A stretch of 64,000 nucleotides of DNA from the sequence record MZ443783.1. One strand, 5' to 3'. Made by a program: the position numbers and the translations under genes. Below the pieces are notes generated by a model. The model searched no databases, was not told where the DNA came from, and saw only the letters and a list, made by a program, of their open reading frames with translations. Shown piece by piece: positions 40,373 through 57,812 of the stretch (position 1 is its first letter; each line of letters starts with the position of its first letter).

Positions 40373-40563
40373 TGAAAACGATCAACGAACAAGTCAACGA
40401 ATTGAAACAGCGCGGCGTGCTTATCATCGAAGAACACCAGAAGCATACGCTGCCAGATTTGACCTTCACGCTCGACTGTATGTGTCTGCCTCATACGAAG
40501 CGTGAAGTAGAGACAACCACGCGCGGCCGCGTTGTTAAAATTCGCCTGACAAACATTCACTAA
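40372..40563 (+). CDS. Small hypothetical protein
   Basis: TAATG coupling. Confidence 0.7.
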   Translation: MKTINEQVNELKQRGVLIIEEHQKHTLPDLTFTLDCMCLPHTKREVETTTRGRVVKIRLTNIH

Positions 40564-40576
40564 CTTTTGTGGTCTT

Positions 40577-40652
40577 GGCCCGCCCGTCCAGAAATGCTCA
40601 CCCCCAATGAGGTGTCTCGCGCAGGGGCATGACGGTCACCGGGTCCTTTTTA
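40577..40652 (+). ncRNA. Candidate structured RNA or attenuator ending in U5
   Basis: Nested stems 40577-82/40640-45, 40584-88/40631-35 and 40594-99/40625-30, then TTTTT. Confidence 0.4.
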
Positions 40653-40707
40653 GAGCGCACTACAGAGTACGCTGTACAAAGTAAACAACAAAACAGGAGG
40701 CTGTTAT

Positions 40708-41052
40708 ATGCGTTTCACCGAAGTATCAAAAGACGCACAGGTTGCGTTAATGTCTAGCGCACTTGCGGGAGTAATTGAGGCATTCACCCGCGAAGAAGAT
40801 GATGAAGGCCGCAAGATTCTAGTTCTGGCCCTCAAGCAAGTCGGTCTGACGGTAGATGAGTTCAGCGCACTTATCTCTGACTTGTCGCCAGAAGTTGAGC
40901 TTGAGATCGTTCGCGTTATGGAAGCTGCTGATGCCGAAGCGGATGAAGAAGACGCAGACAGCGAACTCGACACGATGGAAGAGCGCCCAGGCAACCTGAA
41001 CGATGCGCCGAACATTAATGCAGACGGCTGGGAGAATCTCAAAGATGAGTAG
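40708..41052 (+). CDS. Acidic hypothetical protein
   Basis: GAGG-loop RBS. Confidence 0.85.
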   Translation: MRFTEVSKDAQVALMSSALAGVIEAFTREEDDEGRKILVLALKQVGLTVDEFSALISDLSPEVELEIVRVMEAADAEADEEDADSELDTMEERPGNLNDAPNINADGWENLKDE

Positions 41053-41248
41053 TCAAGATGATGTGAATGGTAGAATTGCTGCGGCCGACGAGCAACGTCA
41101 GAAAGAGCGTGAATCACGCTATGATGATTGGTCGATTGACGACCTGCGTGATGCTCTGCTTGAGAATGGTCTTGTATTTGACGGTGAAGACGTAGACGAC
41201 TACAGCCGCGCAGACTGTATCAGACTGCTACTGGCTGATGGCTTCTAA
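41045..41248 (+). CDS. Small acidic protein with HeH-like module
   Basis: YDDWSIDDLRDALLENGL..YSRADCIRLLL. Confidence 0.75.
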   Translation: MSSQDDVNGRIAAADEQRQKERESRYDDWSIDDLRDALLENGLVFDGEDVDDYSRADCIRLLLADGF

Positions 41249-41301
41249 GCACAAAACTGGACAAAATCGTGGTTGTCTCAAATAGCTGCCTGAACTATAC
41301 T
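41242..41301 (+). promoter_or_regulatory. Promoter cassette P9
   Basis: GCA-N7-GGACAAAATCGTGG-TTGTCT-N17-TATACT. Confidence 0.9.
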
Positions 41302-41307
41302 ATATAG

Positions 41308-41505
41308 ACAGCGAGACAACTATCTCTCTGTATGCCTTTGTTATTGCTTGACCGTGTGTTTTTCGATTTTCCCGGACGCACGGTCCTTTTTAAAGTGGAC
41401 TTCGCTGAGGTTCCTTTAAAAAGGGTTCGATACCCTTTGAGCGCGTCGGGCTTTACGCGGTTTCCGCCTTACGTGCTCTCATGCTAAACCGCAAAGGAAA
41501 TTGAA
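41308..41505 (+). ncRNA. Candidate small RNA or structured 5' leader from P9
   Basis: 10-bp stem 41350-59/41376-85 followed by U5, then three further hairpins before ATG 41506. Confidence 0.45.
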
Positions 41506-42264
41506 ATGCCTACTACTTCACGTCCTAAGACAGAAGACAAGTTTTCCCGTGCTCGCGCCGCCAAAAACTCACCTGAGCGTCAGGCCGCGGCCACCAAGAA
41601 AACGCCACGAGGTCCTTCCTCGGTTCGTCCTAAATCAACGGCAGATCGTGAGCCTAAGATTCGTGACGAGGAGCGTGTGTACAATCTCGTACATGCAATT
41701 CTGAGCGCGTGGAAAGCTGATGTGGGTCATGCCGAACACACGGCAGCCTCTGCTGGTATCATCAAAGTGTCTCGCCGTAAGATTGAAGGTGCCTTGCGTG
41801 ACCTCAAGAATACGCGCTTCACTAAGATCCCGACGCTCATTAATGACGTCCTCGTGTATAACGAAGTCTGCAATGAGTTCGGGCAGTGGGTATATGTCGA
41901 GCATGACAGTCCTGATTGGATTTTCGTGCGCTTGCCTGAAAACAGCACACCTGTGATTCGTGCTGATATCAGCTACGACAAGACAGGCAAAACGTCTGCG
42001 TCTGTTTCGACTTCCAGCGAAGTGTTGCTGGAGGACTTTGACGAAGACGAAGAAGATGAAATCCCTGAGAACGTCGAATATGACGACGAGGATGATTCTG
42101 ATGTGAACGAAGAAGAGGACGACGAGGAGGAGTACCAGTCCTGGTCCCTCAGCCAACTTCAAAACTTTGCTAAGGCCGAAGGTTACATCTGCATCAAAGA
42201 TGAAGGTTGGAACGACCGCCAGACGCTTCTTGCTCGCATCCTGAATAAGGGAGCAATCAAATGA
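41506..42264 (+). CDS. Protein with basic N-terminus, acidic tract and C-terminal HeH-like module
   Basis: C-terminal YQSWSLSQLQNFAKAEG..NDRQTLLARIL. Confidence 0.85.
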   Translation: MPTTSRPKTEDKFSRARAAKNSPERQAAATKKTPRGPSSVRPKSTADREPKIRDEERVYNLVHAILSAWKADVGHAEHTAASAGIIKVSRRKIEGALRDLKNTRFTKIPTLINDVLVYNEVCNEFGQWVYVEHDSPDWIFVRLPENSTPVIRADISYDKTGKTSASVSTSSEVLLEDFDEDEEDEIPENVEYDDEDDSDVNEEEDDEEEYQSWSLSQLQNFAKAEGYICIKDEGWNDRQTLLARILNKGAIK

Positions 42265-42710
42265 GTCTGACTATTCGCTCTGCTGCCGAAACTGCTGCAA
42301 TGATCATTGAAAACGTCACTCTCTACTCTCAAGAGAAGGGGCACGAATATCCGCTGCCGCGCTTTAAGATGCCCGACAATGCGATACGTCGAATCTCTGG
42401 TCATGCTCGCGTTCTGCCTGAAAGCTATATTGAGCAACTGTCTATCGAGCTGCAACAAATCGACTGGATGATGCTGCGGTATAACGCCGGCGAGTTCTTG
42501 TTCATGCACTACGATATCCCAAAGAACTGGACGCGACTGAGTGCGAAGCGTGTGGTCCCTAATGACGACCCTGCCGCTGAGTACGATACGTGGACGCTTC
42601 CTGAACTTCAGGGCTTCGCTCAACGTAACGACTTTTTGCAGCCTGACGAAGAGGGCTTCAACGATAGAGCGTCACTGATTCGCGCTATCATGCTAGGCGA
42701 GACCCATTGA
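42261..42710 (+). CDS. Hypothetical protein with C-terminal HeH-like module
   Basis: YDTWTLPELQGFAQRND..NDRASLIRAIM, homologous to the 41506 C-terminus. Confidence 0.85.
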   Translation: MSLTIRSAAETAAMIIENVTLYSQEKGHEYPLPRFKMPDNAIRRISGHARVLPESYIEQLSIELQQIDWMMLRYNAGEFLFMHYDIPKNWTRLSAKRVVPNDDPAAEYDTWTLPELQGFAQRNDFLQPDEEGFNDRASLIRAIMLGETH

Positions 42711-42729
42711 GTAGGGGGAAGATAATCGA

Positions 42730-42876
42730 ATGAACAAATCTAAGCGGGACGCAGAAGACCCCGACATTGCTAAAATGCGCAAGCGTCTGGTAGATGCGAA
42801 AATCATCAAGCCAGAAGCTGCTGTGAAGCTGTCAAGCAATGACATTGTGAAGCTGTACACTTACTACAGCGTATAA
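42730..42876 (+). CDS. 48-aa protein (not in ORF track)
   Basis: GGGGGAAG RBS; MRKRLVDAKIIKPEAAVKLSSNDIVKLY resembles modules in 43042 and 52780. Confidence 0.7.
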   Translation: MNKSKRDAEDPDIAKMRKRLVDAKIIKPEAAVKLSSNDIVKLYTYYSV

Positions 42877-42885
42877 GCAATAATG

Positions 42886-42911
42886 AGCAGGCAGTGAACG
42901 TGCTGCCTGCT
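42886..42911 (+). terminator. Terminator-like hairpin before P10
   Basis: AGCAGGCAG/CTGCCTGCT 9-bp stem; weak U tract. Confidence 0.5.
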
Positions 42912-42917
42912 ATCTGC

Positions 42918-42978
42918 GAAGTATGCAGAAAACTGGACAAAATCGTGGTTGTTATCTGAAAGCAACCTATGCTATACT
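42918..42978 (+). promoter_or_regulatory. Promoter cassette P10
   Basis: GAAGTATGCA-N7-GGACAAAATCGTGG-TTGTTA-N18-TATACT with TG extension. Confidence 0.9.
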
Positions 42979-43041
42979 TAATGCAGACGCAATATCGCGT
43001 CGGCAAGCAAATCAAACAACAAATACTGAGGAGTATTAATC

Positions 43042-44649
43042 ATGGCACGTCTGGAAACTAACACTAACCTGGTTGGCAAAACTATCATCCTGCTGAACGG
43101 CACCAAATCTAAAATCGAAGATGCAATCGCGTCTGGCTATAAAGTGAAGGGCCAGTCAAAACGTATCGCCACCCGCTGCGTCATCAAAGAAGGTTCTCAC
43201 TTCCGCGAAATTGAGCGCATGAACATGAGCCAGCTGGAAGATACTGGTGAAGGTTACGTTAAACTGAAAGATGCGAAAGCGTCTGGTAAGAAAGCTGGCG
43301 CGAAAGAGAAAGAGCCGAAAGCGTCTGGCAAGAAGACTGGCGGCAAAGCTACGGCCAAAGAGAAAGAGCCGAAAGTTCGCCGTAAGTCTTCTAAAGAGCA
43401 AGGCGATGAGTATCAGGCTCTGGCGAAAGAAATCATCAAAGGCGGCAAACGTGCTGCGCCAGTTGAAATCGACGAGATCGATGGCGACCTGACTGATACC
43501 GTTGCTCAACGTCTGGTAGACGTACTGAACAATACCGAAATCGCCAAGCTGTGCGCTGACAACAAAACGCCGATCGCTAACGCCATCGAAGTTGCTTACG
43601 GCGCTGAGTTCGCACCTGAAACAAACGTCATGCAGATCACGCTGAGCCTGCAATACGCGAAGCCTGTTAAAATGCAGTCATCTTCTACGCTGGAAAACGC
43701 CGATGCAATCGCGGCCCGTGCTAAGAAAATGATCGCGCCGAAGCTGTCTAAGAAAATCGCTAAGGCGATTCGTGAAGCGTTCGGCCTGGAAGACGCCGCC
43801 GAGCTTGAAGCTGGTACCGTGTTGTTGTCTGACGGCGCTGAGTTCGTCTTCTGCGGCGAGAGCGCGAAGCACCTCGGCAAAGCGCTGCTGTATGTTGTAG
43901 AGACCGACAAGTTCAAATCTGTTGTAGGCTCTGCGCTGGCTGATTACGAAATTGATCAGGAAGAAGAAGAGGAAGAAGAGGAAGACCTCGAGGAAGAGGA
44001 GTCTGAGGAGGAAGAAGAAGAGGAGGAGGAGGAAGAAGAGGAGGAGGAAGAAGAAGACGGCGAAGAAGAAGACGGCGAAGAAGACGACGGTGAGTCTGAC
44101 GATACTGAATACCAGTATGTGGCCGTGACCAAAGATCATACCAACATGATCAACAAGAAAGTCACCGCTAAGTATCACGCCGCGCTGGCTGAGCGCTTCA
44201 ACACAACCGAAGAAGCTCTGGTCCCTGGCCTCGTGTTGACTGACGGCGAAACAACGTTCGCTTACCTGGGCTGTGATAGCAAAGGTGGTCTGCTGGTCAT
44301 CGACGTTGAAGCTGAGGAGAACGAAGAAGACGTTCTGCTGTATAGCAAAGCCGATATCAAAGAACTGACCGACTTCAATCCTGTGCTGGATGACGTAGAA
44401 GGCGCTGCCGATGATGAAGGCGAAGAAGAAGACGGTGAAGAAGAAGACGGTGAAGAAGAAGACGGTGAAGAAGAAGACGGTGAAGAGGAAGAAGACGACG
44501 AAGACTTCGACTTCGATGATGTTCCTGCCGTTGACCTGAAAGATCTGTCCGAAGACGAACTGCGTGACCGTGTCGTTGAAGCCGGCCTGACCACCGTGCG
44601 TAAAGCTGACAAAATGAACGCGGCTCAACTGCGCAAGCTCCTGAAATAA
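43042..44649 (+). CDS. Multidomain protein with poly-Glu/Asp tracts
   Basis: First gene after P10. Two internal repeats of a beta-rich domain, long E/D runs, C-terminal HeH-like module. Confidence 0.9.
   Translation: MARLETNTNLVGKTIILLNGTKSKIEDAIASGYKVKGQSKRIATRCVIKEGSHFREIERMNMSQLEDTGEGYVKLKDAKASGKKAGAKEKEPKASGKKTGGKATAKEKEPKVRRKSSKEQGDEYQALAKEIIKGGKRAAPVEIDEIDGDLTDTVAQRLVDVLNNTEIAKLCADNKTPIANAIEVAYGAEFAPETNVMQITLSLQYAKPVKMQSSSTLENADAIAARAKKMIAPKLSKKIAKAIREAFGLEDAAELEAGTVLLSDGAEFVFCGESAKHLGKALLYVVETDKFKSVVGSALADYEIDQEEEEEEEEDLEEEESEEEEEEEEEEEEEEEEEDGEEEDGEEDDGESDDTEYQYVAVTKDHTNMINKKVTAKYHAALAERFNTTEEALVPGLVLTDGETTFAYLGCDSKGGLLVIDVEAEENEEDVLLYSKADIKELTDFNPVLDDVEGAADDEGEEEDGEEEDGEEEDGEEEDGEEEEDDEDFDFDDVPAVDLKDLSEDELRDRVVEAGLTTVRKADKMNAAQLRKLLK
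44419..44478 (+). repeat. 15-bp tandem repeat x4 (GEEED)
   Basis: GG(C/T)GAAGAAGAAGAC repeated four times. Confidence 0.95.
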
Positions 44650-44674
44650 ACCTGTAGTATCGCAACACTGAATA

Positions 44675-44701
44675 ATGTACGCCTCAGACAGGGGCGTACA
44701 T
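44675..44701. terminator. Intergenic hairpin
   Basis: ATGTACGCCTC-AGACA-GGGGCGTACAT; no U tract. Confidence 0.5.
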
Positions 44702-44732
44702 CTGACAACTAAGCTGATTGAGGAATCACACT

Positions 44733-45983
44733 ATGTCAAACGCAAACAAAATTCTGCTTAACGCCCGTGTTCGTCGTACTGATGGCACCATCACTTACAT
44801 CAACAAAGTAAACGCTAACGGTTATAGCACCGACGCGAAAGGCCCGCAGATTCCTGTGAAGCGCATTGTGTTCGCAGGCAAAACGCTGAAAGAGATTGAA
44901 CAGCCATTCGCAAAAGGCGAGTACGTGATTGTGCAGGGTGTCGCTGTGAAGTTGAACAAGCGCCAGCAACGTGAACTGGCTGATGGTACTCTCGACGAGA
45001 AAGCGCTGCGTCCTGAGTTTGGCCGTTTGGTTACCATCGACCCTGAAACAGGCAAAGCAACTGACGGCAAGAAAGTGAAGCCGAAAGCTGACAAGAAAGA
45101 CGGTGGCCTGAAAGCTACGCGCAAGCATAGCGGCGATACCAGCACGAAGAAAGAGCGCAAAGCTGAGAAGGCGAATCTGAAAGACGACCTTGACTTCATT
45201 CAGTCTGACAAGATTGACCGTAAAGCCGAACTCGTCAAGCTCCTCGATGGCTCTATCGCTGACGCGAATACGAAAGAGCGCCGTAAGCAATTGTCCGAAG
45301 CGTTTGACATGGACTGGAAAGATCTTAAAAAGCACGGCGGTAAAGGTGTTGTCAAACATCTCGGCCGCAAGGCAGCACAAAGCGCCGTTGACCGTCTGTC
45401 TGCTACGCTGACGCAAGACGCATTCATCAAACAAATGCCGACTGAGTTGAAGCGCCTGATTCAAGACCGTCGTCTGGTTCTGAATAAGCGTCAGATTGAA
45501 GCTGTACTCTCTGCATTGGGTCTGGACGTTAAGTTCTACGCCATCGCAATGCAAACGCTGCTGGGTAACCTGTCGCTCGCTGTAGACGACACGGCCGTGA
45601 ATCCCAAAGCAGGTAAGAAAGCAAAGAAGCGCAAACCAGCAAAGCCTGAGTATGCGTCTGATAAAGAAATAAAGCGCCGTATCAAAAAGATGAAAGTCAG
45701 TTTGATCATGCCTCCTAAGAGCGAAATCAAAACGGCTAAAGCTCACCTGAAACAAGCGAAAGCCATTCTCGCCGACAAGCTGGGTATCTCGGCGAAAGAT
45801 ATCAAGCGCGGTCTGATCGTGCATCATAAGAACGGCGTTGACTACATGTTCGTTGCGTGTGACCTGCGCGGACCAATCTTCATCGACAAAGATGGTGATC
45901 CGTCTGTGTATACCTACGCCAACCTCGAATCGACTTTCGACTTCACGCTGGCGAAATCTTCTGAGCTGGATGAGGCTGTATGA
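44733..45983 (+). CDS. Lys-rich protein, apparent paralog of 43042
   Basis: GAGG-loop RBS; shares N-terminal and C-terminal domain patterns with 43042. Confidence 0.9.
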   Translation: MSNANKILLNARVRRTDGTITYINKVNANGYSTDAKGPQIPVKRIVFAGKTLKEIEQPFAKGEYVIVQGVAVKLNKRQQRELADGTLDEKALRPEFGRLVTIDPETGKATDGKKVKPKADKKDGGLKATRKHSGDTSTKKERKAEKANLKDDLDFIQSDKIDRKAELVKLLDGSIADANTKERRKQLSEAFDMDWKDLKKHGGKGVVKHLGRKAAQSAVDRLSATLTQDAFIKQMPTELKRLIQDRRLVLNKRQIEAVLSALGLDVKFYAIAMQTLLGNLSLAVDDTAVNPKAGKKAKKRKPAKPEYASDKEIKRRIKKMKVSLIMPPKSEIKTAKAHLKQAKAILADKLGISAKDIKRGLIVHHKNGVDYMFVACDLRGPIFIDKDGDPSVYTYANLESTFDFTLAKSSELDEAV

Positions 45984-46363
45984 CAAATAACGAAATACTC
46001 CTGTCTGGTATGTTTGCTCAACTGTATGCGCGGCTGGTAACGGCCGCAATACTGAAAACGCATGTGTTCTATTCTGACTTGGCCCCGATAGTATTCGGCA
46101 TCCAACTGTCCGAAGTGAGCACTGCGCAATATGACGCTCTGTGGAGTTTAGTAGCGACTTCTATGAGCGTCGATATCTCGCATGGAAGAGCACCGCTTGC
46201 TGCGCTCTATGTGTCGCGGTCAACTGATGATAAGAAGCCGAGCCGCAAGTTCTTCCGTGAGTATCACAAGATTACAGGCAAGCATCTGTCGGACAAAGAG
46301 TGGCAAGCACTCGTCCAGCAGGTGTACACTCAATACGAATCAAATCTCCGAGAGCCATCATGA
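45980..46363 (+). CDS. Hypothetical protein
   Basis: ATGA coupling. Confidence 0.75.
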   Translation: MTNNEILLSGMFAQLYARLVTAAILKTHVFYSDLAPIVFGIQLSEVSTAQYDALWSLVATSMSVDISHGRAPLAALYVSRSTDDKKPSRKFFREYHKITGKHLSDKEWQALVQQVYTQYESNLREPS

Positions 46364-46821
46364 AAAAAGCAAAGGTAGTAATTAGTCGTGGTGGATATCG
46401 ACCGGCCTCCCACGAAGAAGCACAAAAGCTGGTGGTCGAAATGTTGTTAGCTTCAATCGGCGTTGACCCTACTATACTGAGCCAGCAAATGCTGTTGAAC
46501 GTTGCGAACTATAACTTCCTGACGTCAATCGCAGATACAGGCAAAGCAAATAACGCGAACCAGACAACTCTGCATAAAACTGTAAAAGAACTTAATGCGT
46601 TTTGTAGATTGCACAAGATTCCGCTGGGCTTGCTAATTATGCCCCATACATCGGCTAGTGATTATGCTGGTGATGAGGTTGTAGCGATTCCGTGGGAGCA
46701 TGTGCGTAAAAACACATTAAGCCAGAACGCTGTCAATTCCCTGTTCCAAACAGTCGAAGCTGATGGCTATCCGCAGTTTGTGACTGACGCGAAAACAGTA
46801 GAGGAATACAATGTTTTATGA
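46360..46821 (+). CDS. Hypothetical protein
   Basis: ATGA coupling. Confidence 0.75.
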   Translation: MKKAKVVISRGGYRPASHEEAQKLVVEMLLASIGVDPTILSQQMLLNVANYNFLTSIADTGKANNANQTTLHKTVKELNAFCRLHKIPLGLLIMPHTSASDYAGDEVVAIPWEHVRKNTLSQNAVNSLFQTVEADGYPQFVTDAKTVEEYNVL

Positions 46822-48091: not shown

Positions 48092-48115
48092 ACCACTTAT
48101 CTGAGGAGATAACGC

Positions 48116-51112
48116 ATGTCATCTAATACTAATAATCTGGGCGCTGCTGCAACATTCGGCTCTGAGACTCAAAAGCAATTGAACGACCAACAACGTCGTG
48201 CTCATTCTGCTGAGTCGGGCCACGTAAACAAATGTACCATCGTTGTACTGACTTCCCTGAATGCCAACAATCGTTTCTCGTACATGTCTGCCGACGAGCA
48301 ACTGCGTGAACACGATATCGTGGGCAAAGTAATGGACCGTCTGCCTGGTTTGATCGAACGTGCGTCTGGCGTTTCTTCTGACCCAAACAGTGCGTACCAC
48401 ATTCTGCATCCGAACAACGGCGTGCCGACCCGCATCGACGAGCGCATCAAAGTCGGTGAAGCTGATTCTGTCATCGTTTCATATACTGTAAATAAAGCAG
48501 TGTCAGAAATGTATGGCAGTTTGTCACTGGCTCTGTTTAGTGCTGGCGAAGGTGATATCGCAGACCTCGCGGCTGAGTATGGTATTCACTCCATCTCAAT
48601 CGTTGAAGAGGCGAAAGCGCCTGACTACATCAAAGCTCTTGCCGAACAGGTAGAAGCTCTGAAAATTGTAAATCTCACTAGCATTGACGAAGCTGATGGT
48701 GCTCTTGAGAAGCCTGTCATTAATTACAGCGCTCTGCCGGGCAATCCAATCAACGTACTGTCTGGCGCTGTTCGTACCTTCATCATGCAATCTATCAGCG
48801 GCGAAGTCTTTGCTGCAATTCCAAATAACGGAGAATTGAACGTGAAACAACCTACCAACGCAACGCCGGTTAATCTGGACGAAGACTTCGACGCAGAAGA
48901 CGAAGTGGTGGACCAGCAGGGCGAAGGCGAAGAAGGCGAAGAGCCTACCGGTACTGACCTGTTCGGCTACAAAGCAGAAGCGCTGGACATTGGCCAGATG
49001 ACCGAAGCGCTCGAAGCTCTGTCGTATGACGTTAGCGCGATGGACGAAGCAGGCATTCGTGAGTCGTTCGAAACTGAGCAACAAATCTGGCTGGAAAAGA
49101 ACGACAACGCCGAGTCTGATGAAGACGAAGACGATGGCGAAGAAGTTGAAGACGACGAAGACGAAGCTGGCGATGACGAACCTCTGAACCCGGCTCTGTA
49201 TCTGGCTCACCTGCTGTCTGCTGATATGCTGGACCGCCGCGCTCTGAAAACTCTGGTGCTGTCGCAGGACCTGAAGGTGTACAAGTCTGACACCGAAGAA
49301 ACTCTGACAACCAAGTTGTTGGAATCGGTTGAAGACGCAACCGAAGAAGAACTGGTCGAAATGCTGACCGTGTTCGTTGGCCTGCTGGACGAGAAAGAAA
49401 TTGATTGTCCGAACATGCGCGCCGCTCTGGCTTCTGATGAAGATTCCGAAGAAGATTCTGAGGAAGAAGAAGACGAAGAAGAGGAGTCTGAGGAAGAAGA
49501 CGAAGACGAATCTGCTGTTGCCGATGAAGACGAAGTGCAACATCAAATCGACGCCGTTGAAGATCCCCTCGACTACTTCCAGTTCCCGGGCGGCGCACTG
49601 ACTGCCGAGCAACGTATCGCTGCTGTCGAAGCGATGGGCGAAAACACCGAAGGCATGTCTATCGTGCAGGTGATGAAAGCGTTCCAGCGTATTCAAACCC
49701 AGACCAACGAAATCGACGTTGAGTCCGAAGGCGAAAGCAACGTTGCAGAACTCGAAGCGCTGCTCGGTCAGTACGACGAAGCGACCGTTCAGCATGTAGC
49801 TGAAAGCCTGGGCATCCTCGTTGACGAATGCGAAACCGTTGACGATATGATCGAAGCGATTGCTAACGGCGGTAGCGAAGACGACTTCGCGGCTGTTGAA
49901 GAAATCGCAACCAACTACGGTATCGACCTGTCTGAAATTGCAGACGGTGATGATCTGGACTTCGTTGATGCGCTGCTGGCCGTGCTGCCTGCGTTCCTGT
50001 CTGACGACGAGCAGGAAGAAGAAGAAGAAGAAGACGACGCCGAAGAAGACGAAGCGGAAGAAGTTGAAGAAGTCGCTGATGTTGACACCGACGTTGTTGA
50101 AAACGATAGCCTGCGTTTCGTCAAAGACGTTAACACCGAAAACTCTGCCGGCCCGATGCTGTCTGTTGAAATGGACCAGTCGCTGGTGATTAACTTCACT
50201 TTGACTGACGGTGATACCTACAGCGAAATCGAATCTGAGCTGTCTGATATCAACGGCGTAAACTACCGCTATCCGTTCAACATGGGTAAAGCTGGTAAAG
50301 CACCTGGCGCGATGCTGCTGCCTGCCCAGTCTCTGATTGAGATTACTGAGCGCACTCGCACTACTCGCTTCCTGGCCGATCCGAAAACGTTCGACGTTGC
50401 ACTGTGGGCGCAGAGCCTCGAAGCAACTCTGGCTGCTGAAATCGCTGCTGTCCTGTATGAAGGCCGCATCGAAGACGGTCAAGACCCAAGCGAAGCGGGC
50501 ATTGTTGTCGGTGACTTCCTGGACGAAGAGGAACTGGAAGCGGCCACTGAACTCGGTCACATCGACCCTGAGCAGTTCGACGAAATGCAAGGCGACCACC
50601 TGCCTATCTCCAGCCTGTACAGCGCTCGTTCTCGTGTGCGTCCAGTGCGTGTAGATACCGCTTACGTTGCTCTGCATACCACCGTGCTGAACGTTGCAGT
50701 CCCTGGTTTCTGGGGCGATGCGCCAGTACAACGTATGGTTCAGGCCGCTGTCAACCGTGTCATTACAATGGCGCAGGACGTTGAAGGCATCAAAGTGTAC
50801 GCAGGATTCACTATGGAATCTGCCGCACTGCTGAACAACGACCGCCTGTTCGAAGCGCTGTCTACGCTGCGTGAGATCGAGAACGTCCAGTCTTACTCTG
50901 CTGCTGACGCTGCGAACTTCGACGATGCCGAAGACGTGATCGAAGTGGCAGGTGCGCTCGACTCTCGTGACCTGCCACTGTCTATCCTGTCAAGCGGTCT
51001 GGCTGCTGCGACCTTTGACAACGGCGGTGACCTGACCGTTCTGGTTCCATGCTCTGTCGTCGAAGAAGAAGACGAAGTGGACGAAGACGAAGACGACGGC
51101 GAAGACGAATAA
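48116..51112 (+). CDS. 998-aa extremely acidic multidomain protein
   Basis: GAGG-loop RBS; several E/D tracts separating small helical modules. Confidence 0.9.
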   Translation: MSSNTNNLGAAATFGSETQKQLNDQQRRAHSAESGHVNKCTIVVLTSLNANNRFSYMSADEQLREHDIVGKVMDRLPGLIERASGVSSDPNSAYHILHPNNGVPTRIDERIKVGEADSVIVSYTVNKAVSEMYGSLSLALFSAGEGDIADLAAEYGIHSISIVEEAKAPDYIKALAEQVEALKIVNLTSIDEADGALEKPVINYSALPGNPINVLSGAVRTFIMQSISGEVFAAIPNNGELNVKQPTNATPVNLDEDFDAEDEVVDQQGEGEEGEEPTGTDLFGYKAEALDIGQMTEALEALSYDVSAMDEAGIRESFETEQQIWLEKNDNAESDEDEDDGEEVEDDEDEAGDDEPLNPALYLAHLLSADMLDRRALKTLVLSQDLKVYKSDTEETLTTKLLESVEDATEEELVEMLTVFVGLLDEKEIDCPNMRAALASDEDSEEDSEEEEDEEEESEEEDEDESAVADEDEVQHQIDAVEDPLDYFQFPGGALTAEQRIAAVEAMGENTEGMSIVQVMKAFQRIQTQTNEIDVESEGESNVAELEALLGQYDEATVQHVAESLGILVDECETVDDMIEAIANGGSEDDFAAVEEIATNYGIDLSEIADGDDLDFVDALLAVLPAFLSDDEQEEEEEEDDAEEDEAEEVEEVADVDTDVVENDSLRFVKDVNTENSAGPMLSVEMDQSLVINFTLTDGDTYSEIESELSDINGVNYRYPFNMGKAGKAPGAMLLPAQSLIEITERTRTTRFLADPKTFDVALWAQSLEATLAAEIAAVLYEGRIEDGQDPSEAGIVVGDFLDEEELEAATELGHIDPEQFDEMQGDHLPISSLYSARSRVRPVRVDTAYVALHTTVLNVAVPGFWGDAPVQRMVQAAVNRVITMAQDVEGIKVYAGFTMESAALLNNDRLFEALSTLREIENVQSYSAADAANFDDAEDVIEVAGALDSRDLPLSILSSGLAAATFDNGGDLTVLVPCSVVEEEDEVDEDEDDGEDE

Positions 51113-51120
51113 TATCGTCT

Positions 51121-51153
51121 AAACGAGTGGCTCGAAAGGGCCACTCGTTTTCT
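51121..51153 (+). terminator. Intrinsic terminator
   Basis: AAACGAGTGGCTC-GAAA-GGGCCACTCGTTT then TCTT. Confidence 0.9.
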
Positions 51154-51168
51154 TGGGGATCTGTAAAC

Positions 51169-51990
51169 ATGACACAAGAAGTAGACCACGGAGCTAACAT
51201 CGTTCAGATGATTGGTGACCGTGACGAGAAAATCCGCGAACTGACCACGAACTACCGCGAAGTGCATGGTCAGAAGGTTGACCTCGAAGCTGAGTTGAAT
51301 GTCTTTGCGAATGAGAACAAAGACCTCCGCTTAACGATTCGCCGCAACGAACGTACTCATGCCGCCGAGATTGCTCTGCGTGATGAACGCATTCGTGAAG
51401 TGGTTGGTTTCTGCAACGAAGAAACTCGCGCAAAAGCTGAGTTATCCGCAGAACTTGAATCTGTAAAACAAAAGAGCGCACCGGCAATTGCCCTGCCATT
51501 CGTTTTGCAGATGATAATGTCTGCTGGCGTAGCGCACTACCACGCGATCATCGCTCAATGCGCTATCGCTGCTGTTAACCGCGCAACAAATAAAGTTGCC
51601 CGCGAGTTGCGTGAAATTTATGATAACGATAATGTAGTGAAGCATCCTTCGCTGTATCGTGTCGCAACCCGCCTGTGTAAACAGCTCGATGTTGACCTGC
51701 CGTCTGTTCCTGAATTGCAGAAGCACCTCAAAGAACATGTGGCGCAGAACATCGACTTCTACCTGAAGGACCCGCAGTACGATCTGTCTGAATCTGCCTT
51801 GCGTCAGATTATCGCTGCGAAAAACAATGCCGCACATTATGGCTCTTATGGCCGTGACGTGTATCAGATGTTTGACTGGCTACCAGCTCTGACTGCAAGC
51901 CTGGAAGACGTTGAAGATGACTACAACGATTTGGTGGAACAATCTGTCTATCAAGTCTGTCGTAATCTGATTAACGATAGCTTTTCATAA
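51169..51990 (+). CDS. Coiled-coil hypothetical protein
   Basis: GGGGA RBS; heptad-like N-terminal half. Confidence 0.8.
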   Translation: MTQEVDHGANIVQMIGDRDEKIRELTTNYREVHGQKVDLEAELNVFANENKDLRLTIRRNERTHAAEIALRDERIREVVGFCNEETRAKAELSAELESVKQKSAPAIALPFVLQMIMSAGVAHYHAIIAQCAIAAVNRATNKVARELREIYDNDNVVKHPSLYRVATRLCKQLDVDLPSVPELQKHLKEHVAQNIDFYLKDPQYDLSESALRQIIAAKNNAAHYGSYGRDVYQMFDWLPALTASLEDVEDDYNDLVEQSVYQVCRNLINDSFS

Positions 51991-52744
51991 TCTGTAAAAG
52001 TTACCTGCAATCAAAACTGTAAACACTAATTGAAGTTCGAACCGAGCGACAAGCTCACACTTATAAAATCCCGGAGCATTAACAATGGCTAAAGCACCAA
52101 AGACTTCACTGACACCTACCCTGGTTTCTCGTATCGCTAAAAAATCCGGCTCTATCGGTACTTCAAAAGTTAAGCCGTCTGACCTGCCGCACGATATCGT
52201 GATGGAAACCGTGTTGCCTGTTGAGCTGATTGGCTTCATTACCGACCGCACCGAAAACAGCGTTACCATTCGTCACAAAAAAGGTCACGGTTCTTCTGCG
52301 CAAATCGTTTCTACCTTCGGCCCGAACCAACTGCTGTCCGTGCTGGGCGAAGCTGGTTCTCACGGTAGCGTTATCGCTCTGATTAATGCGCCGGTTCGTG
52401 AGTACAAAGGCTTCAACGTTAAATACAAAGGCTCAACGCTGATCGCTACCTCTGTTGAGACTGGCGAAGTTGTTGAAGTGAACACCGCACTGCCTGGCAT
52501 TACCGTTCGCGCTACTGTGAACGAAACTGCTGCCGCTAAAAAGTACGGTACGCCGCTGCCTACCAAAGCTAAAAAGCTGGACAAAGGCGACAAAGCTGGC
52601 AAATCTGCGAAAGCGGTAAAGAAAGTAAAAAAGTAAGTAAGTCTGACGAAGACTTCTAACTTTCGAAATCTGTAAATATTAAGTATGCAGCGGGCTAAAA
52701 TGTTCCGCTGCCTGTCTCTCGAAATCTGTAAATCTTAATTGAAG
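51991..52744 (+). promoter_or_regulatory. Cluster of CTGTAAA motifs (candidate second promoter class)
   Basis: Copies at 51991, 52016, 52669 and 52725. CTGTAAA-N3-TAATTGAAG occurs twice and TCGAAATCTGTAAAT twice. Confidence 0.5.
52085..52636 (+). CDS. Basic hypothetical protein
   Basis: GGAG RBS; Lys-rich termini; strong codon bias. Confidence 0.85.
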   Translation: MAKAPKTSLTPTLVSRIAKKSGSIGTSKVKPSDLPHDIVMETVLPVELIGFITDRTENSVTIRHKKGHGSSAQIVSTFGPNQLLSVLGEAGSHGSVIALINAPVREYKGFNVKYKGSTLIATSVETGEVVEVNTALPGITVRATVNETAAAKKYGTPLPTKAKKLDKGDKAGKSAKAVKKVKK

Positions 52745-52779
52745 CAACGTCGCTTCTAATCAAACAGGAAATAAATACC

Positions 52780-53553
52780 ATGGCTAAAGCAACCGCAAAT
52801 ACCGCAGCAATCGTTCTGGCTAAAATGCTGGGCGTAGTTATCGAAAACGCCGACGCGAAAGAAATCGCAGCAATCCTGAAAGAAGCCGGTCTGACTGTCT
52901 CTGGCGGTAAAGTGGTAAAAGCTGAAAAAGGCGGTAAAGCTGCTAAAGGCAAAAAGGCCAAAGCACCTACCGTTGCTGAAATCGTCGCTGCCATCAAGGA
53001 CGAAGAAGAACTGGACATCTCCGGCGTAAGCGAAGATGACCTGCGCGCCGCTGTAGTTAAAGCGAAACTGTCCACCGCTAAGAAAGCAAAAGCGCTGGAC
53101 GAAGATGACCTGCGCGATCTGCTGAACGAAAACCTGGGCGGCGAGTCCGATGAGGACGAAGACGAGGACGAAGACGAGGACGAAGACGACTCGGACGACG
53201 AAGATGAAGACGGCGACGACGAAGACGAAGACGACGAAGACTCTGATGAAGAAGAAGAGGACGACGAAGACGACGAAGACGGCGACGACGATGAAGAAGA
53301 AGACGAAGACGAGGATGAAGATGAGGACGAAGATGAAGATGATCTCGACCTCGACTCCCTCGACAAGAAAGAGCTGTTAGCTCTGGTCCTCGAACACAAG
53401 CTGGCGCCGGCTAAGAAAGCCAAGAAAATGGACGAAGATGAACTGCGCGAACTGTGCGAAGAACACTTCGGCGGCGAAGATGACGAAGACGAAGATGAGG
53501 ACGAAGACGACGAAGACTTCGACGATGAAGACGAAGACGAAGACGACGAATAA
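52780..53553 (+). CDS. Poly-Asp/Glu protein with two HeH-like repeats
   Basis: SEDDLRAAVVKAKL..KAKALDEDDLRDLL and DKKELLALVLEHKL..KAKKMDEDELRELC, separated by ~60 consecutive almost-all D/E residues. Confidence 0.9.
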   Translation: MAKATANTAAIVLAKMLGVVIENADAKEIAAILKEAGLTVSGGKVVKAEKGGKAAKGKKAKAPTVAEIVAAIKDEEELDISGVSEDDLRAAVVKAKLSTAKKAKALDEDDLRDLLNENLGGESDEDEDEDEDEDEDDSDDEDEDGDDEDEDDEDSDEEEEDDEDDEDGDDDEEEDEDEDEDEDEDEDDLDLDSLDKKELLALVLEHKLAPAKKAKKMDEDELRELCEEHFGGEDDEDEDEDEDDEDFDDEDEDEDDE

Positions 53554-53572
53554 GTCCTGATCTGAACCGGCC

Positions 53573-53746
53573 GCCCCTCTAGTTCTAACGAATGAGCGAG
53601 GGGCAAATATTCGTGTTAAAATGATGCGAATATTTTTGTAAAAAGTTTCAAAATTCCTGTTGTCGTATGTTGAACATAATAATGTATGACTACAGGAAAT
53701 CAAACCTGAATAAATTTATCTTTTCATCCAGCGGTGAAAACGCCGC
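53573..53746. repeat. Four consecutive inverted repeats in AT-rich intergenic DNA
   Basis: 53573-53604, 53605-53635, 53656-53696 and 53731-53746. Confidence 0.75.
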
Positions 53747-53771
53747 ATCAAATATAAAGTAAGGAACTATC

Positions 53772-54290
53772 ATGTCCAAGAAAGCAATTAGCGGCCTGAA
53801 CAAAGAAATCCGCGCAATCGAAAAATCTGAAAAAGCTCTGACCAAAACCGCTGGCGAAATCACCAAACAGTCCGAAGCGCTGGCTGCTCGTCGTGCTGGT
53901 CTGAGTGCCCAGGTCGAAGCTCTGCAAAACGACGGCGCGGCTCCTGCTGCTAAACCTGCTAAAGCGAAAGCCGCTAAAGCAGAGAAAGCTGCTAAGCCTG
54001 CCAAAGCTGAAAAAGCTGGCAAAAAAGCTAAAGCTGAAAAAGCTGAAAAACCTGCTAAGGCTAAAAAAGCCAAAGCTGAGAAAGCTGAGAAGCCTGCTAA
54101 AGCAGACAAAAAAGCAAAAGCCGCCAAAGCTGAAAAGCCGGCCAAAGCTGAAAAAGCTGGTAAGAAAGCTAAAGCAGAAAAACCTGCTAAAGCTGAAAAA
54201 GCCGGCAAGAAAGTGAAAGCAGACAAAGCTGGCAAAGCCGGTAAGAAAAGCAAAAAAGAAGCCGAAGACTTCGACTTCGATATGGAATAA
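53772..54290 (+). CDS. Histone H1/AlgP-like Lys-Ala-Pro repeat protein
   Basis: N-terminal coiled coil, many (P)AKAEKA(GKK) repeats, acidic tip EDFDFDME. Confidence 0.8.
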   Translation: MSKKAISGLNKEIRAIEKSEKALTKTAGEITKQSEALAARRAGLSAQVEALQNDGAAPAAKPAKAKAAKAEKAAKPAKAEKAGKKAKAEKAEKPAKAKKAKAEKAEKPAKADKKAKAAKAEKPAKAEKAGKKAKAEKPAKAEKAGKKVKADKAGKAGKKSKKEAEDFDFDME

Positions 54291-54322
54291 GCAAGCGCCG
54301 CGCATTAGCGGTACTTGATTCG

Positions 54323-54354
54323 AAAGGGCAGCGCTGACGAGCGTTTGCCCTTTT
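54323..54354 (+). terminator. Intrinsic terminator
   Basis: AAAGGGCAGCGCT-GACG-AGCGTTTGCCCTTTT. Confidence 0.85.
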
Positions 54355-54387
54355 GTCATATCTGTGTCAATTTTCGAGGTGAATCGA

Positions 54388-57555: not shown

Positions 57556-57557
57556 TC

Positions 57558-57812
57558 ATGTTCAACGTTTCAAACTTACCTGACGGCACAATGGTACGTT
57601 TTCTTGATATGCCTGCTGTGCAATACCCACCACTGACTGAGGAACAAAACAGTCAGTGTGAGTCATTGTATGGGCAAGCGCGTGAACTGGCGAAGAACGT
57701 TAATGTGTCTGGGTTCACTGTCGTTGACGGCAAACTGAATGAGCGTGTGCAGGTTCAAATGAGCCGCACCACTCTCGATAAGATCAATGCGATTGCCAAG
57801 GGAGAACAGTAA
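57558..57812 (+). CDS. Small hypothetical protein between the topoisomerase subunits
   Basis: GGAGG RBS; TAATG coupling to gyrA. Confidence 0.75.
   Translation: MFNVSNLPDGTMVRFLDMPAVQYPPLTEEQNSQCESLYGQARELAKNVNVSGFTVVDGKLNERVQVQMSRTTLDKINAIAKGEQ

Follow-up and report, generated by a model that had tools for sequence, protein, structure and literature searches.

The last 64 kb of the 267-kb genome of Erwinia phage pEa_SNUABM_28 (Alexandravirus), a jumbo phage whose host is the fire-blight bacterium, form the window analysed here; they carry a gene module that belongs to the core of the "hairy" jumbo myoviruses in the PaBG/Alexandra/Y3 lineage, and the encoded proteins are largely disordered, with opposite and tightly conserved net charge. 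Because these charges are near constant in distant relatives, the charged proteins probably act together on DNA, to judge from their sequences; the best reading, which we infer and hold tentatively, is that of a replication-phase polyelectrolyte module that would organise DNA. An earlier note had claimed that acidic and Lys-rich proteins are interleaved here, and the case proves stronger than claimed: the charges stand in the translations and are conserved in eight lineages. Along the cluster, acidic genes (40708, 41506, 43042, 48116 and 52780, named by first position) are interspersed with basic ones (44733, 52085 and 53772):

40708..41052, + strand: acidic protein, 114 aa, 27% D/E, net −22 (translation); variable accessory
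41003..41248, + strand: acidic protein, 81 aa, with a C-terminal helix-loop-helix-like module (translation)
41506..42264, + strand: 252-aa protein with an acid tract (run 12) and a C-terminal helix-loop-helix-like module
42261..42710, + strand: 149-aa protein, phrog_26231
43042..44649, + strand: acidic protein, 535 aa, net −78, acid run 58 (translation)
44733..45983, + strand: basic protein, 416 aa, net +31, pI 9.8 (translation)
45980..46363, + strand: conserved module protein, 127 aa; NCTB_074 match, E 6.6e-5
46360..46821, + strand: conserved protein, 153 aa
46811..48091, + strand: basic protein, 426 aa, net +13; NCTB_075 match, E 1.4e-12
48116..51112, + strand: giant acidic protein, 998 aa, net −190 (translation)
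51166..51990, + strand: conserved protein, 274 aa
52085..52636, + strand: basic protein, 183 aa, net +15, pI 10.0 (translation)
52780..53553, + strand: super-acidic protein, 257 aa, 46% D/E, net −90 (translation)
53772..54290, + strand: Lys-rich protein, 172 aa, 28% K, net +27 (translation)

The main acidic proteins are 43042, 48116 and 52780, the main basic ones 44733, 52085 and 53772. Acid runs of at least 22 residues occur in six genes of an approximate genome-wide set of ~324, and three of the six lie inside the cluster block of ~15 genes (hypergeometric P = 0.0015). The conserved core spans 43042-54290, while the genes at 40708-42876 are variable accessories: in phage Y3, a 40708-like gene is directly followed by the 535-aa gene, the accessories between being skipped. 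Six enterobacterial genera keep the gene order and the net charges, and Pseudomonas phage PaBG and marine phage NCTB do so for most of the genes. Over the eight lineages, lengths drift and identities fall to about 25-30% while order and charge persist: net charge is −94.5±4.3 for the super-acidic protein (which ranges from 150 to 294 aa), +27.9±1.7 for the Lys-rich coiled-coil protein and +13.9±1.5 for the beta-core protein. This constancy of charge amid drifting sequence and length marks the oppositely charged proteins as a selected, co-inherited unit rather than compositional noise. The charges do not cancel: the cluster sums to about −420 on the acidic side and about +86 on the basic side, so the sequences do not look like a simple, self-contained coacervate pair, and the polyanions must have partners outside the cluster, for which host proteins are equally possible.

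The super-acidic 257-aa protein (acid run 72) begins with a helical part, a Lys linker, a first helix-loop-helix module and a poly-D/E tract of ~70 residues; a second module comes next, and then a tail of poly-D/E whose end is invariant and contains Phe. AF2 models it as structured helix-loop-helix modules embedded in disorder, with pLDDT reaching 77-87 only at residues 61-120 and 190-230; it has 11 relatives among 5.8e9 proteins, and NCTB_078 matches it (E 4e-23). The 535-aa protein opens with a small beta domain and a Lys-rich linker, continues with two globular repeat copies with poly-Glu between them and a DFDF motif, and closes with a helix-loop-helix module; its orthologues are NCTB_073 (E 2.6e-26) and PaBG_00131 (E 8e-6; hhalign probability 94%). 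It shares an N-terminal domain of ~56 aa with the basic 416-aa protein (hhalign probability 84%, E 7.9e-6), which is confined to the enterobacterial clade and has no counterpart found in PaBG or NCTB. The 998-aa protein carries several poly-D/E tracts between globular N- and C-terminal regions; it is weakly linked to NCTB_076 (probability 19%), and no link to PaBG_00127 was found. For the 274-aa gene that follows it, a longer reading that starts at 51049 and has poly-Arg at its N-terminus was rejected as acid-tract repeats read out of frame.

Among the basic proteins, the 426-aa one keeps a net charge of +13 to +17 in six genera. The 183-aa protein, whose gene is conserved more widely than any other in the module (62 representative clusters), has an all-beta core (residues ~36-145; AF2 pLDDT ~90) flanked by disordered Lys-rich tails and is matched by PaBG_00126 and NCTB_077 at E ~3e-21. 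In Foldseek its core has no match among solved structures in the PDB, OB folds and SSBs included; among predicted viral structures (BFVD) it matches Alexandra, PaBG and three others at E <= 7e-4. In some relatives a poly-D/E tail is naturally fused onto the beta-core protein, and the tips of this family are acidic in 35 of 62 members and acidic with an aromatic residue in 22 of 62. The 172-aa protein starts with a helix of ~50 aa that is heptad-periodic (P <= 0.016 in 6/7 lineages), continues with K/A/E/P tandem repeats with periods of 9/18/27/45 and ends in an acidic-aromatic tip; its counterparts are PaBG_00124 (hhalign probability 96%, E 4e-9) and NCTB_079 (E 2e-12).

Can any of these proteins be named? 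No Pfam, NCBIfam, PDB or Foldseek match does so for a charged protein of the module, and searches revealed no recognised DNA-binding domain anywhere in the module. The description "histone-like" therefore holds for composition and architecture but not for fold: neither a histone fold nor a match to Hc1, the chlamydial H1-like protein, was found. The statement that most of the proteins carry HeH-like modules was too strong: such modules are seen in 52780 (two), 43042, 41003, 41506, 42261 and possibly 54827 and 42730, and the three Lys-rich proteins show no apparent one. In Pfam, hits of cluster proteins to HeH, SAP or LEM all stay below threshold, so HeH/SAP membership is not significant, although AlphaFold predicts the helix-loop-helix modules nonetheless. 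What survives of the chromatin or condensate interpretation in the earlier note is a selected, co-inherited charged unit, kept in eight lineages and tied to DNA transactions; its histone and HeH elements find no significant support.

The tie to DNA transactions comes from the neighbours and the promoters. As had been noted, a topoisomerase lies directly downstream of the cluster; Pfam identifies it as a phage topoisomerase II:

55522..59464, + strand: phage topoisomerase II
55522-57555, + strand: GyrB-like subunit (Pfam DNA_gyraseB, 4e-27)
57558-57812, + strand: small ORF between the subunits
57812-59464, + strand: ParC/GyrA-like subunit (Pfam DNA_topoisoIV, 8e-57)

Both subunits begin with Lys-rich N-terminal extensions, and Lys-rich tails are found on topo II, the clamp loader and a ParB-like protein. 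The module adjoins topo II in six enterobacterial genera and in NCTB, and in PaBG it lies between the topo IV subunit A gene and sigma/SSB/RecA/DnaB genes. The sigma-like genes also placed downstream by the earlier note are not seen within the window, but an RpoD-like gene does follow the module in PaBG. The regulatory signals are:

40692-40705, + strand: GAGG-loop RBS of 40708
41257..41301, + strand: σ70-type promoter behind a 20-nt element
42933..42978, + strand: presumably early, σ70-type promoter of the 535-aa gene, TG-extended −10, kept in 8/8 lineages
43022-43037, + strand: GAGG-loop RBS of 43042
44675-44701, + strand: hairpin 3' of 43042
48097-48112, + strand: GAGG-loop RBS of 48116
51989..52023, + strand: two CTGTAAA middle-type promoter motifs upstream of 52085
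52667..52732, + strand: two tandem CTGTAAA promoter motifs (52667-52676, 52723-52732)
52687-52711, + strand: hairpin between the tandem motifs (−14.4 kcal/mol, z −2.9)
53573-53604, + strand: hairpin 3' of 52780
53662..53690, + strand: imperfect palindrome or 5' hairpin upstream of 53772 (−12.3 kcal/mol, z −2.0)
54316..54358, + strand: terminator-like hairpin and U-run ending the 53772 unit (−26.4 kcal/mol, z −3.65)

CTGTAAA occurs 21 times (0.5 expected); it also precedes DNA polymerase, clamp-loader and methyltransferase genes, and it serves two of the three small genes, 52085 and 52780. Adjoining topo II and replication or recombination genes and sharing this motif with replication genes, the unit is tied to DNA transactions. 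Genes 52085, 52780 and 53772 form separate hairpin-flanked units; the tandem motifs with their hairpin before 52780 are kept in six genera, as is the 53662..53690 hairpin, which shows compensatory changes. The 20-nt element before the 41257..41301 promoter is identical to 42933-42952 (two exact copies; 0.01 expected). As for the "strong promoters" attributed to the cluster, a plain σ70 scan gives no enrichment (14 sites, 11.6 expected), but conserved promoter motifs exist. The proposed GAGG-loop RBSs are confirmed for 40708, 43042, 44733 and 48116; the window has 12 such hairpins (2.1 expected), every one just before an ATG, eight of them serving genes outside the cluster.

How might such proteins work together? 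In the model we favour, the polycations (the 172-aa, 183-aa beta-core, 416-aa and 426-aa proteins) would coat phage DNA during replication, the 172-aa protein dimerising through its N-terminal coiled coil and presenting a Lys/Ala/Glu/Pro repeat tail with a short acidic tip. The polyanions (257, 535 and 998 aa), strings of poly-D/E with small helix-loop-helix modules and Phe-containing acidic motifs, would vie with DNA for the polycations, and also for the Lys-rich tails on topo II, clamp loader and ParB-like protein. This competition could chaperone and buffer basic proteins and set the condensation of replicating DNA beside the topoisomerase; the model stops short of proposing a separate phase or compartment. 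The acidic-aromatic tips on basic proteins may compete from within the same molecule or serve as docking peptides, as do the acidic tails at the C-terminus of SSBs and on HMGB1.

Several known systems resemble parts of the module. Eukaryotic linker histone H1 with prothymosin-α, and histones with nucleoplasmin and other acidic chaperones, form oppositely charged, largely disordered pairs; the phage module shares their long poly-D/E tracts and, with histone chaperones, acidic stretches with aromatic anchor residues, but it has neither a histone fold nor a nucleoplasmin core, belongs to a bacterial virus and is far from charge-balanced, so this is resemblance only, not membership. Eukaryotic proteins also combine SAP domains with acidic tracts, and the phage modules recall SAP/HeH/LEM units (~35-40 residues, two helices around an extended Lys-rich loop, beside acid tracts), but all their Pfam hits are sub-threshold, and the PDB yields no match by sequence or fold. 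In architecture, the 172-aa protein corresponds to AlgP and PhaF, histone-H1-like nucleoid-associated or tethering proteins of Pseudomonas: AlgP combines a coiled-coil domain at its N-terminus with a disordered domain of KPAA repeats and a short tip, and binds both DNA and a polyanionic condensate, polyphosphate, whereas PhaF tethers granules to the nucleoid (PMC11894788). The three-part layout is common to both (a coiled-coil-type N-terminal helix, long disordered Lys/Ala/Pro-rich repeats and a tip of other composition), but sequence homology is undetectable, the phage repeats are far shorter and include Glu, the tip carries acidic and aromatic residues, the putative polyanion partner is a phage protein rather than polyphosphate, and DNA binding is a prediction. 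Hc1-type H1-like proteins reported in large aquatic "moraphages" set a precedent for a Lys-rich H1-like protein from a large phage, with a proposed role in DNA compaction (PMC12619734); those proteins match Pfam PF07432, which 53772 does not, and no acidic partner module is described for them. The chimallin-bounded nucleus is another jumbo-phage way to organise replicating DNA; all known nucleus-forming phages are reported to be Chimalliviridae (PMC11724907), whereas Alexandravirus is another lineage and no shell protein is implied in the module.

The acidic excess, which requires cationic partners outside the cluster, is also what one would expect if the polyanions were flexible DNA mimics that sequester host nucleoid-associated proteins, restriction or other nucleases, or RNA polymerase, with the Lys-rich proteins compacting or silencing the nucleoid of the host. 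Such a host takeover is possible, if on the unlikely side. Other phages offer established examples of acidic DNA mimics with restriction enzymes or nucleoid proteins as their targets; σ70-type promoters typical of early genes precede the 535-aa gene and 41506, that of the 535-aa gene fitting takeover as well as the replication-phase model, and the + strand block around the cluster is rich in small ORFan genes, as early regions typically are. However, no known DNA-mimic family is matched: T7 Ocr, ArdA, T4 Arn and SPO1 Gp46 are small folded mimics with patterned surface charge, and although they too are strongly acidic phage proteins that imitate DNA charge and bind DNA-binding proteins, the module carries its charge in disordered, homopolymer-like tracts of 60-100 residues. 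Moreover, the promoters of 52085 and 52780 are of the replication class rather than the early one, pairing and fusion with phage basic proteins are conserved, and the module is kept across Pseudomonas, Enterobacterales and marine hosts, which argues for a phage-internal target rather than a host-specific one.

We think it improbable that the module is a replisome or recombination hub, in which acidic tails ending in aromatic or hydrophobic residues would serve as docking peptides for polymerase, helicase, topoisomerase or recombinase and the tracts would be linkers. The acidic C-terminal tails of bacterial SSB, T7 gp2.5 and T4 gp32 mediate auto-inhibition and partner docking, and in them, as here, a basic or DNA-binding body precedes an acidic tail with a hydrophobic or aromatic end; acidic-aromatic tips occur on the 172-aa and 257-aa proteins and many 183-aa family members (the 22 of 62 above), DFDF lies within the 535-aa family, the 183-aa layout of basic N-terminal segment, beta core and tail recalls single-strand-binding proteins, and the module adjoins topo II, SSB, RecA/UvsX and DnaB. 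But the Foldseek search of the core gave no OB-fold or SSB match, the tails sit on Lys-repeat proteins, an annotated SSB is already encoded elsewhere in the genome, and tracts of 70-100 D/E residues with fixed net charge far exceed what linkers need.

A place in or around the virion, as internal head or ejected proteins packaged with the DNA or as assembly chaperones for very basic late proteins, is a similarly doubtful prospect. Highly charged internal proteins are common in jumbo-phage heads; the head module of this genome has acidic gp142, gp145 (net −137) and gp153, and the very basic late proteins gp189 (+64) and gp198 (+42) could need an acidic chaperone. Against this, the cluster sits on the strand block opposite to the structural genes and contains no copy of the late structural motif [AG]CTAATTT, 16 of whose 17 occurrences are on the structural strand. 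PaBG gp123-132, the counterparts, are absent from the 14 identified PaBG virion proteins, weak evidence since this sole virion proteome of the lineage is shallow and covers just abundant bands. The earlier note's own alternative of plain structural virion parts is thus unsupported.

Very unlikely, and already disfavoured, is neutral expansion of slippage-prone GAA/GAC and AAA/GCT repeats in unrelated ORFan genes without concerted function: the tracts are tandem DNA repeats and acid runs vary among relatives (24-58 and 58-83), but net charge stays within ±5% over eight lineages, and order, termini, modules and dedicated promoters and terminators are conserved. We give equally little credence to translation-related mimicry, with a uL6-like beta core and an acidic protein whose helical N-terminus and acidic-aromatic end imitate ribosomal stalk proteins: the top Foldseek hits of the core are ribosomal uL6 chains and the PaBG authors note that several proteins resemble ribosomal ones (PMC7412058), but the uL6 hits are non-significant (E 0.04-0.3, TM-scores 0.15, rmsd above 14 Å) and the module is linked to DNA-metabolism genes, not translation genes.

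Among the accessory genes, hhalign gives no significant likeness between the 114-aa protein and the N-terminus of the 257-aa one (E 0.057), and 41003 scores E 0.0017 (19.1 bits) against Pfam Ish1, below the 26.6-bit cutoff. The C-terminal modules of 41506 and 42261 are homologous, as paralogues (BLASTP E 1e-8).

Erwinia phage pEa_SNUABM_28, a member of the genus Alexandravirus with which positions 40000-60000 of the window show 100% identity, is related to the phages Alexandra, Dickeya phage AD1, Y3, Yoloswag, the Dickeya JA phages, and Yersinia phage fHe-Yen9-02 and, more remotely, to the Pseudomonas phages PaBG and Lu11 and the marine phage NCTB; the whole group, the last three included, is called "hairy Myoviridae" or the "Lupandier" group. 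In the records of pEa_SNUABM_28 (MZ443783.1, 267,143 bp; 203,143 is added to a window position to obtain that of the record) and of the relatives examined, all genes between 40.7 and 54.3 kb of the window are labeled "hypothetical protein". The cluster of charged proteins that the earlier note described here is real, as the translations attest, and is conserved in gene order and net charge in eight lineages (six enterobacterial genera, PaBG, and NCTB).

Charged products of the cluster, by gene start in the window and strand, with the net-charge range of each family in the six enterobacterial genera
40708, +: 27% Asp/Glu
41506, +: carries an Asp/Glu tract
43042, +: 535 aa, 27% Asp/Glu, longest acid run 58, net -78 (family -56 to -78)
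44733, +: 416 aa, net +31 (family +22 to +31)
46811, +: 426 aa, net +13 (family +13 to +17)
48116, +: 998 aa, acid run 26, net -190 (family -174 to -201)
52085, +: 183 aa, net +15 (family +13 to +16)
52780, +: 257 aa, 46% Asp/Glu, acid run 72, net -90 (family -89 to -100)
53772, +: 172 aa, 28% Lys, net +27 (family +26 to +30)

At the DNA level the acid tracts are tandem GAA/GAC repeats, and the Lys-rich tail of 53772 consists of tandem AAA/GCT/GAA units of 9-45 nt (periods 9, 18, 27, and 45; span 53952-54238). Acid runs of at least 22 residues occur in 6 of the 324 genes of an approximate genome-wide set; three of the six lie within the ~15-gene block of the cluster (P = 0.0015) and the other three in the head-morphogenesis module. 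The acidic set of that module, seen in the close relative pEa_16 (NC_061441.1 104949-105368, 107343-109367, and 116695-118557), comprises gp142, gp145 (679 aa, net -137, annotated as "ATPase"), and gp153, encoded beside the major head protein and protease; a scaffold or internal role is likely for them, and they are separate from the cluster studied here. Two kinds of apparent coding signal were discarded as frame artifacts of the repeats: a poly-Arg "N-terminus" of ORF 51049 (51049-51165), and long antisense ORFs over the acid tracts (711, 437, and 316 aa; including 48596-50731, - strand), which are not genes.

The cluster keeps the same order, with products of about 535, 416, 127, 153, 426, 998, 280, 183, 257, and 172 aa, upstream of topoisomerase II in all six enterobacterial genera, in agreement with the position assigned to it earlier; the "sigma-like genes" also placed downstream are not seen within the window. 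If the sequences of these proteins drift, what is it that is kept? Among the six genera, identity of the 998-aa protein drops to about 31-39% while the charges hold. The pattern extends to PaBG (net charges -60, +14, -93, and +31 for 00131, 00126, 00125, and 00124) and to NCTB (-118, +29, -85, +11, -100, and +28 for 073, 075, 076, 077, 078, and 079), where the module ends just 5' of gyrB. Homology to these distant counterparts is detected for the 535-aa family (NCTB, E 2.6e-26; PaBG, E 8e-6, hhalign probability 94%), the 426-aa family (NCTB, E 1.4e-12), the 183-aa family (PaBG and NCTB, each E about 3e-21; the PaBG protein also by Foldseek on predicted viral structures, E 3e-12), the 257-aa family (NCTB, E 4e-23), and the 172-aa family (PaBG, hhalign probability 96%; NCTB, E 2e-12). 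PaBG_00125 is a positional analog only, because hhalign against the 257-aa family gave a degenerate alignment; so are PaBG_00127 and NCTB_076, whose orthology with the 998-aa protein is unproven by profile comparison. Across the eight lineages, net charge is -94.5±4.3 for the super-acidic protein, whose length varies between 150 and 294 aa, +27.9±1.7 for the Lys-rich protein, and +13.9±1.5 for the beta-core protein. Such constancy reflects selection for charge and is not a product of drift: this is a deeply conserved, wholly unannotated module whose net charge has stayed constant under selection while its sequences drifted.

Neither the cluster proteins nor their PaBG and NCTB counterparts have a named family in Pfam, NCBIfam, PHROGs, or PADLOC; single-protein and profile searches of PDB sequences returned nothing, Foldseek searches of both AF2 models against the PDB nothing significant, and Rfam nothing in 40-56 kb. 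The literature search found no study of the cluster genes and, the PaBG particle proteome apart, no transcriptome or proteome for the lineage. Eleven relatives of the 257-aa family were found among 5.8 billion proteins, each on a contig consistent with this clade; for the C-terminal region of the 998-aa protein the number is 29. The 183-aa family reaches more widely, to 26 close relatives and 62 representative clusters. Because no tool names a function, any functional reading has to be inferred.

The AF2 model of 52780, built on a 10-sequence alignment, is confident only at residues 61-120 and 190-230 (pLDDT 77-87), each of which forms a helix, a short helix, and a helix (residues 85-94, 100-103, and 108-118; 196-205, 211-214, and 219-230); the acid tracts are disordered, and the C-terminal end, a single Phe amid Asp/Glu, is invariant in the family. 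Two short helices and an extended loop within ~35 residues is the helix-extended-helix (HeH) layout, and the modeled modules have it. No HeH, SAP, LEM, or Ish1 match reached its Pfam cutoff (Ish1, the best, 19.7 bits vs 26.6; SAP 15.1 vs 23.9; LEM 10.9 vs 24), SAP was touched by only 2 of 15 aligned modules (E ~0.04), the 15-module profile found nothing relevant among PDB sequences, and Foldseek gave no match below E 7 for the whole, mostly disordered 52780 model, in which short modules are hard to detect. We therefore call the predicted modules helix-loop-helix, compatible with HeH in size and secondary structure. Searched with a narrow HMM of the 52780 modules, the genome yielded no additional copy, and 40708 was rejected as a paralog of the 52780 N-terminus (E 0.057). 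Another acidic protein with such a module, 43042, is a mosaic: an N-terminal beta-type domain of ~56 aa, shared with the basic 44733 (hhalign probability 84%, E 7.9e-6; found only by profile-profile comparison, BLASTP giving no match), is followed by a Lys-rich linker, a globular unit present twice and split by poly-Glu, and a DFDF motif. Its C-terminal module is a homolog of the 52780 modules (PHROG cross-hit E 3e-6). The earlier assertion that most proteins of the cluster carry HeH-like modules was too strong, since none is apparent in the three Lys-rich proteins. Long poly-Asp/Glu tracts, as in acidic histone chaperones, are present in 43042 (58), 48116 (26), and 52780 (72); no chaperone core domain (nucleoplasmin, prothymosin-like) was matched above the Pfam cutoff, and Nop14 and SPT6_acidic were sub-threshold, compositional hits.

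The basic proteins are built differently from one another. 52085 is predicted by AF2 to have an all-beta core (residues 36-145, pLDDT about 90) between disordered Lys-rich tails; Foldseek found no significant PDB match for this core (best TM-score 0.24; the top weak matches are to ribosomal uL6), and no OB-fold or SSB chain is among the matches to the confident model. In 53772, an N-terminal helix (residues 5-53) shows heptad periodicity (P <= 0.016 in six of seven lineages) and leads into K/A/E/P repeats, after which comes an acidic tip containing two aromatic residues; the Lys/Ala/Pro-rich repeat domain is kept in eight lineages and the acidic-aromatic tip in every lineage compared. Its nearest architectural analog is AlgP/PhaF, by a similar three-part layout and not by homology: AlgP begins with a coiled-coil domain, continues with a disordered domain of Lys/Ala/Pro repeats, and closes with a short tip; it binds both DNA and a polyanionic condensate (PMC11894788). 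Searches with 53772 gave weak coiled-coil models and nothing else in Pfam or NCBIfam, no Hc1 (PF07432), and PHROG matches without function, and no histone-fold family matched any cluster protein; "histone-like" thus survives as a description of composition and architecture. Other large phages are also reported to encode an H1-like protein (PMC12619734).

Acidic and basic parts also meet in one chain. Several 183-aa-family clusters have the beta core joined to a poly-Asp/Glu tail of 60-100 residues (P0124, net -72; P0091, net -36), and a fusion of this sort is classical evidence that the parts work together; on the sole metagenomic contig examined, a fused gene is followed by separate poly-acid and Lys-rich coiled-coil genes (L014 4240-5019). 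The natural fusions of the core are P0124, P0091, P0121, and P0089, the partner being a poly-Asp/Glu tail or Asp/Phe/Gly repeats. Disordered Lys-rich tails recur elsewhere in the genome: on both topoisomerase II subunits (window 55522-55580 and 57812-57960), the clamp loader (C-terminus), a ParB-like protein (N-terminus), and several unnamed proteins. Outside topoisomerase II, the loci concerned are pEa_16 gp046, gp213, gp227, gp184, gp189, gp198, and gp207 and window 18374-19900; of these, gp189 is a late, very basic, H1-like protein (net +64).

When would these genes be expressed? Three promoter types can be made out in the DNA: sigma-70-type, replication-class, and late. Sigma-70-type promoters with an identical 20-nt upstream element serve 41506 (at 41257) and 43042 (at 42933), the latter recognizable in eight of eight lineages; a sigma-70 consensus scan showed no enrichment. 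The element itself (41257-41276 = 42933-42952; 0.01 copies expected) lies immediately 5' of the promoters and could serve as an UP-like element or as a binding site for a regulator. The motif A[AT]CTGTAAA[TC]A has 21 sites in 264 kb vs 0.5 expected; in pEa_16 it lies 5' of the DNA polymerase, clamp-loader, and DNA methyltransferase genes and in the SSB region.

Sites of the two phage promoter-like motifs, A[AT]CTGTAAA[TC]A and [AG]CTAATTT; those 5' of 52085, 52780, and the gene after topoisomerase II are of the former
Window 3410
Window 51989 and 52014, 5' of 52085
Window 52667 and 52723, 5' of 52780, with a hairpin between them
Window 59467, 5' of the gene after topoisomerase II
pEa_16, loci L004-L007

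The layout at 52780, a double motif with an intervening hairpin, is kept in six genera. A strong terminator-like hairpin (-26.4 kcal/mol, z -3.65) lies downstream of 53772, and stable hairpins also lie 3' of 43042 and 52780. The three small genes (52085, 52780, and 53772) thus look like separate, probably highly expressed units, which we infer to be switched on with replication. An imperfect palindrome or hairpin 5' of the 172-aa gene (53662-53690), kept in six genera with compensatory changes, is a candidate operator or 5'-UTR structure. The late motif, [AG]CTAATTT, lies 5' of structural genes, on the structural strand in 16 of 17 cases, and is absent from the cluster; together, the CTGTAAA and CTAATTT motifs offer a readable middle/late map for an unannotated lineage.

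What would such a module do? We favor, tentatively, a replication-phase polyelectrolyte system, to which the AlgP/PhaF-like layout, the precedent of H1-like proteins in large phages, and the Lys tails on topoisomerase II, the clamp loader, and the ParB-like protein all point. The polycations would coat DNA, and the polyanions would vie with DNA for the polycations and the Lys-tailed enzymes. The module resembles both eukaryotic H1/acidic-chaperone logic and bacterial AlgP-polyanion condensate logic. The earlier suggestion of oppositely charged partners on DNA is reasonable to this extent, with conservation, fusion, linkage, and promoter class in its support. If the module organizes phage DNA, it would provide a tractable bacterial-virus model for polyelectrolyte-driven genome organization and give a role to a core ORFan block in a lineage used for biocontrol of fire blight and soft rot.

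Could these proteins go further and form a shell-less protein-polyelectrolyte phase, a condensate or compartment around replicating phage DNA? This is possible, if unsupported, and we think it unlikely. Poly-Asp/Glu scaffolds would combine with H1-like polycations in a complex coacervate, its composition set by the fixed net charges (about -95, +28, and +14), and Lys-rich tails would be the entry tickets for topoisomerase II, the clamp loader, and the ParB-like protein. Jumbo phages that lack chimallin have 250-kb genomes to replicate in the open cytoplasm. Unlike phages that build a chimallin nucleus, pEa_SNUABM_28 is classified outside Chimalliviridae, and no chimallin gene is annotated in the lineage records examined; a phase, if true, would be a second, chimallin-independent route to compartmentalized replication in jumbo phages.

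The most durable rival to a polyelectrolyte system is that the polyanions are decoys that bind host proteins. It is kept alive by arithmetic: the acidic proteins of the cluster sum to about -420 and the basic ones to about +86, and so unbalanced a charge requires partners from outside the cluster. The acid tracts are disordered in AF2, and no anti-restriction DNA mimic of the Ocr/ArdA type was matched in Pfam, NCBIfam, or the defense-system models of PADLOC; decoys, which we consider somewhat unlikely, would be a new, disordered class of DNA mimic. Less probable still is docking on the replisome by acidic tips. Each of the three small proteins has acidic tips that end in Phe, Leu, Trp, or Met; such a tip is present in 35 of 62 members of the 183-aa family, and 22 of 62 have one with an aromatic residue. 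An acidic tip with a hydrophobic or aromatic end, as in SSB, is thus shared by the 172-aa protein in all lineages and by some 183-aa members, but the OB-fold core of SSB was not found.

A virion or chaperone role is about as improbable as docking. Among the relatives, a particle proteome has been published for PaBG alone; it lists 14 Coomassie-visible bands: gp76, 80, 81, 83, 94, 191, 202, 213, 214, 215, 240, 257, 261, and 263 (PMC7412058). PaBG gp123-132, which include the cluster counterparts, are absent from this 14-protein list (PMC7412058), which is shallow and so makes for weak evidence; the Y3 GenBank record leaves particle proteins unmarked and is of no use for virion membership. Taken with strand, position, and promoter class, the late motif being absent, the list disfavors a structural role, and the proviso that these might be plain structural virion parts finds no support. 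Neutral repeats and translation mimicry are each very improbable.

One further feature concerns translation. Perfect hairpins with a stem of 4-6 bp and a 4-nt GAGG loop number 12 in the window vs 2.1 expected, all on the + strand and all about 2-9 nt before an ATG; the other 200 kb of the close relative have only 5.

GAGG-loop hairpins in the window, all + strand
7622, 8094, 12196, 12712, 13094, 13514, 28552, 39210, 40697, 43028, 44720, 48103

Many products of the genes that follow are acidic. The stems vary by gene, and orthologs show compensatory changes (e.g., AATACT/AGTATT vs AATTCT/AGAATT). Single hairpins are weak and energetically unremarkable (about -4 kcal/mol, z about -1), so the case is made by number, position, and covariation; each could be a loop-presented Shine-Dalgarno sequence or a translational operator. 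The 998-aa ortholog Alexandra_334 (L001 14619-17615) has an annotated start upstream of that in the other genera, with no GAGG-loop ribosome-binding site there; this start codon is probably a misannotation.
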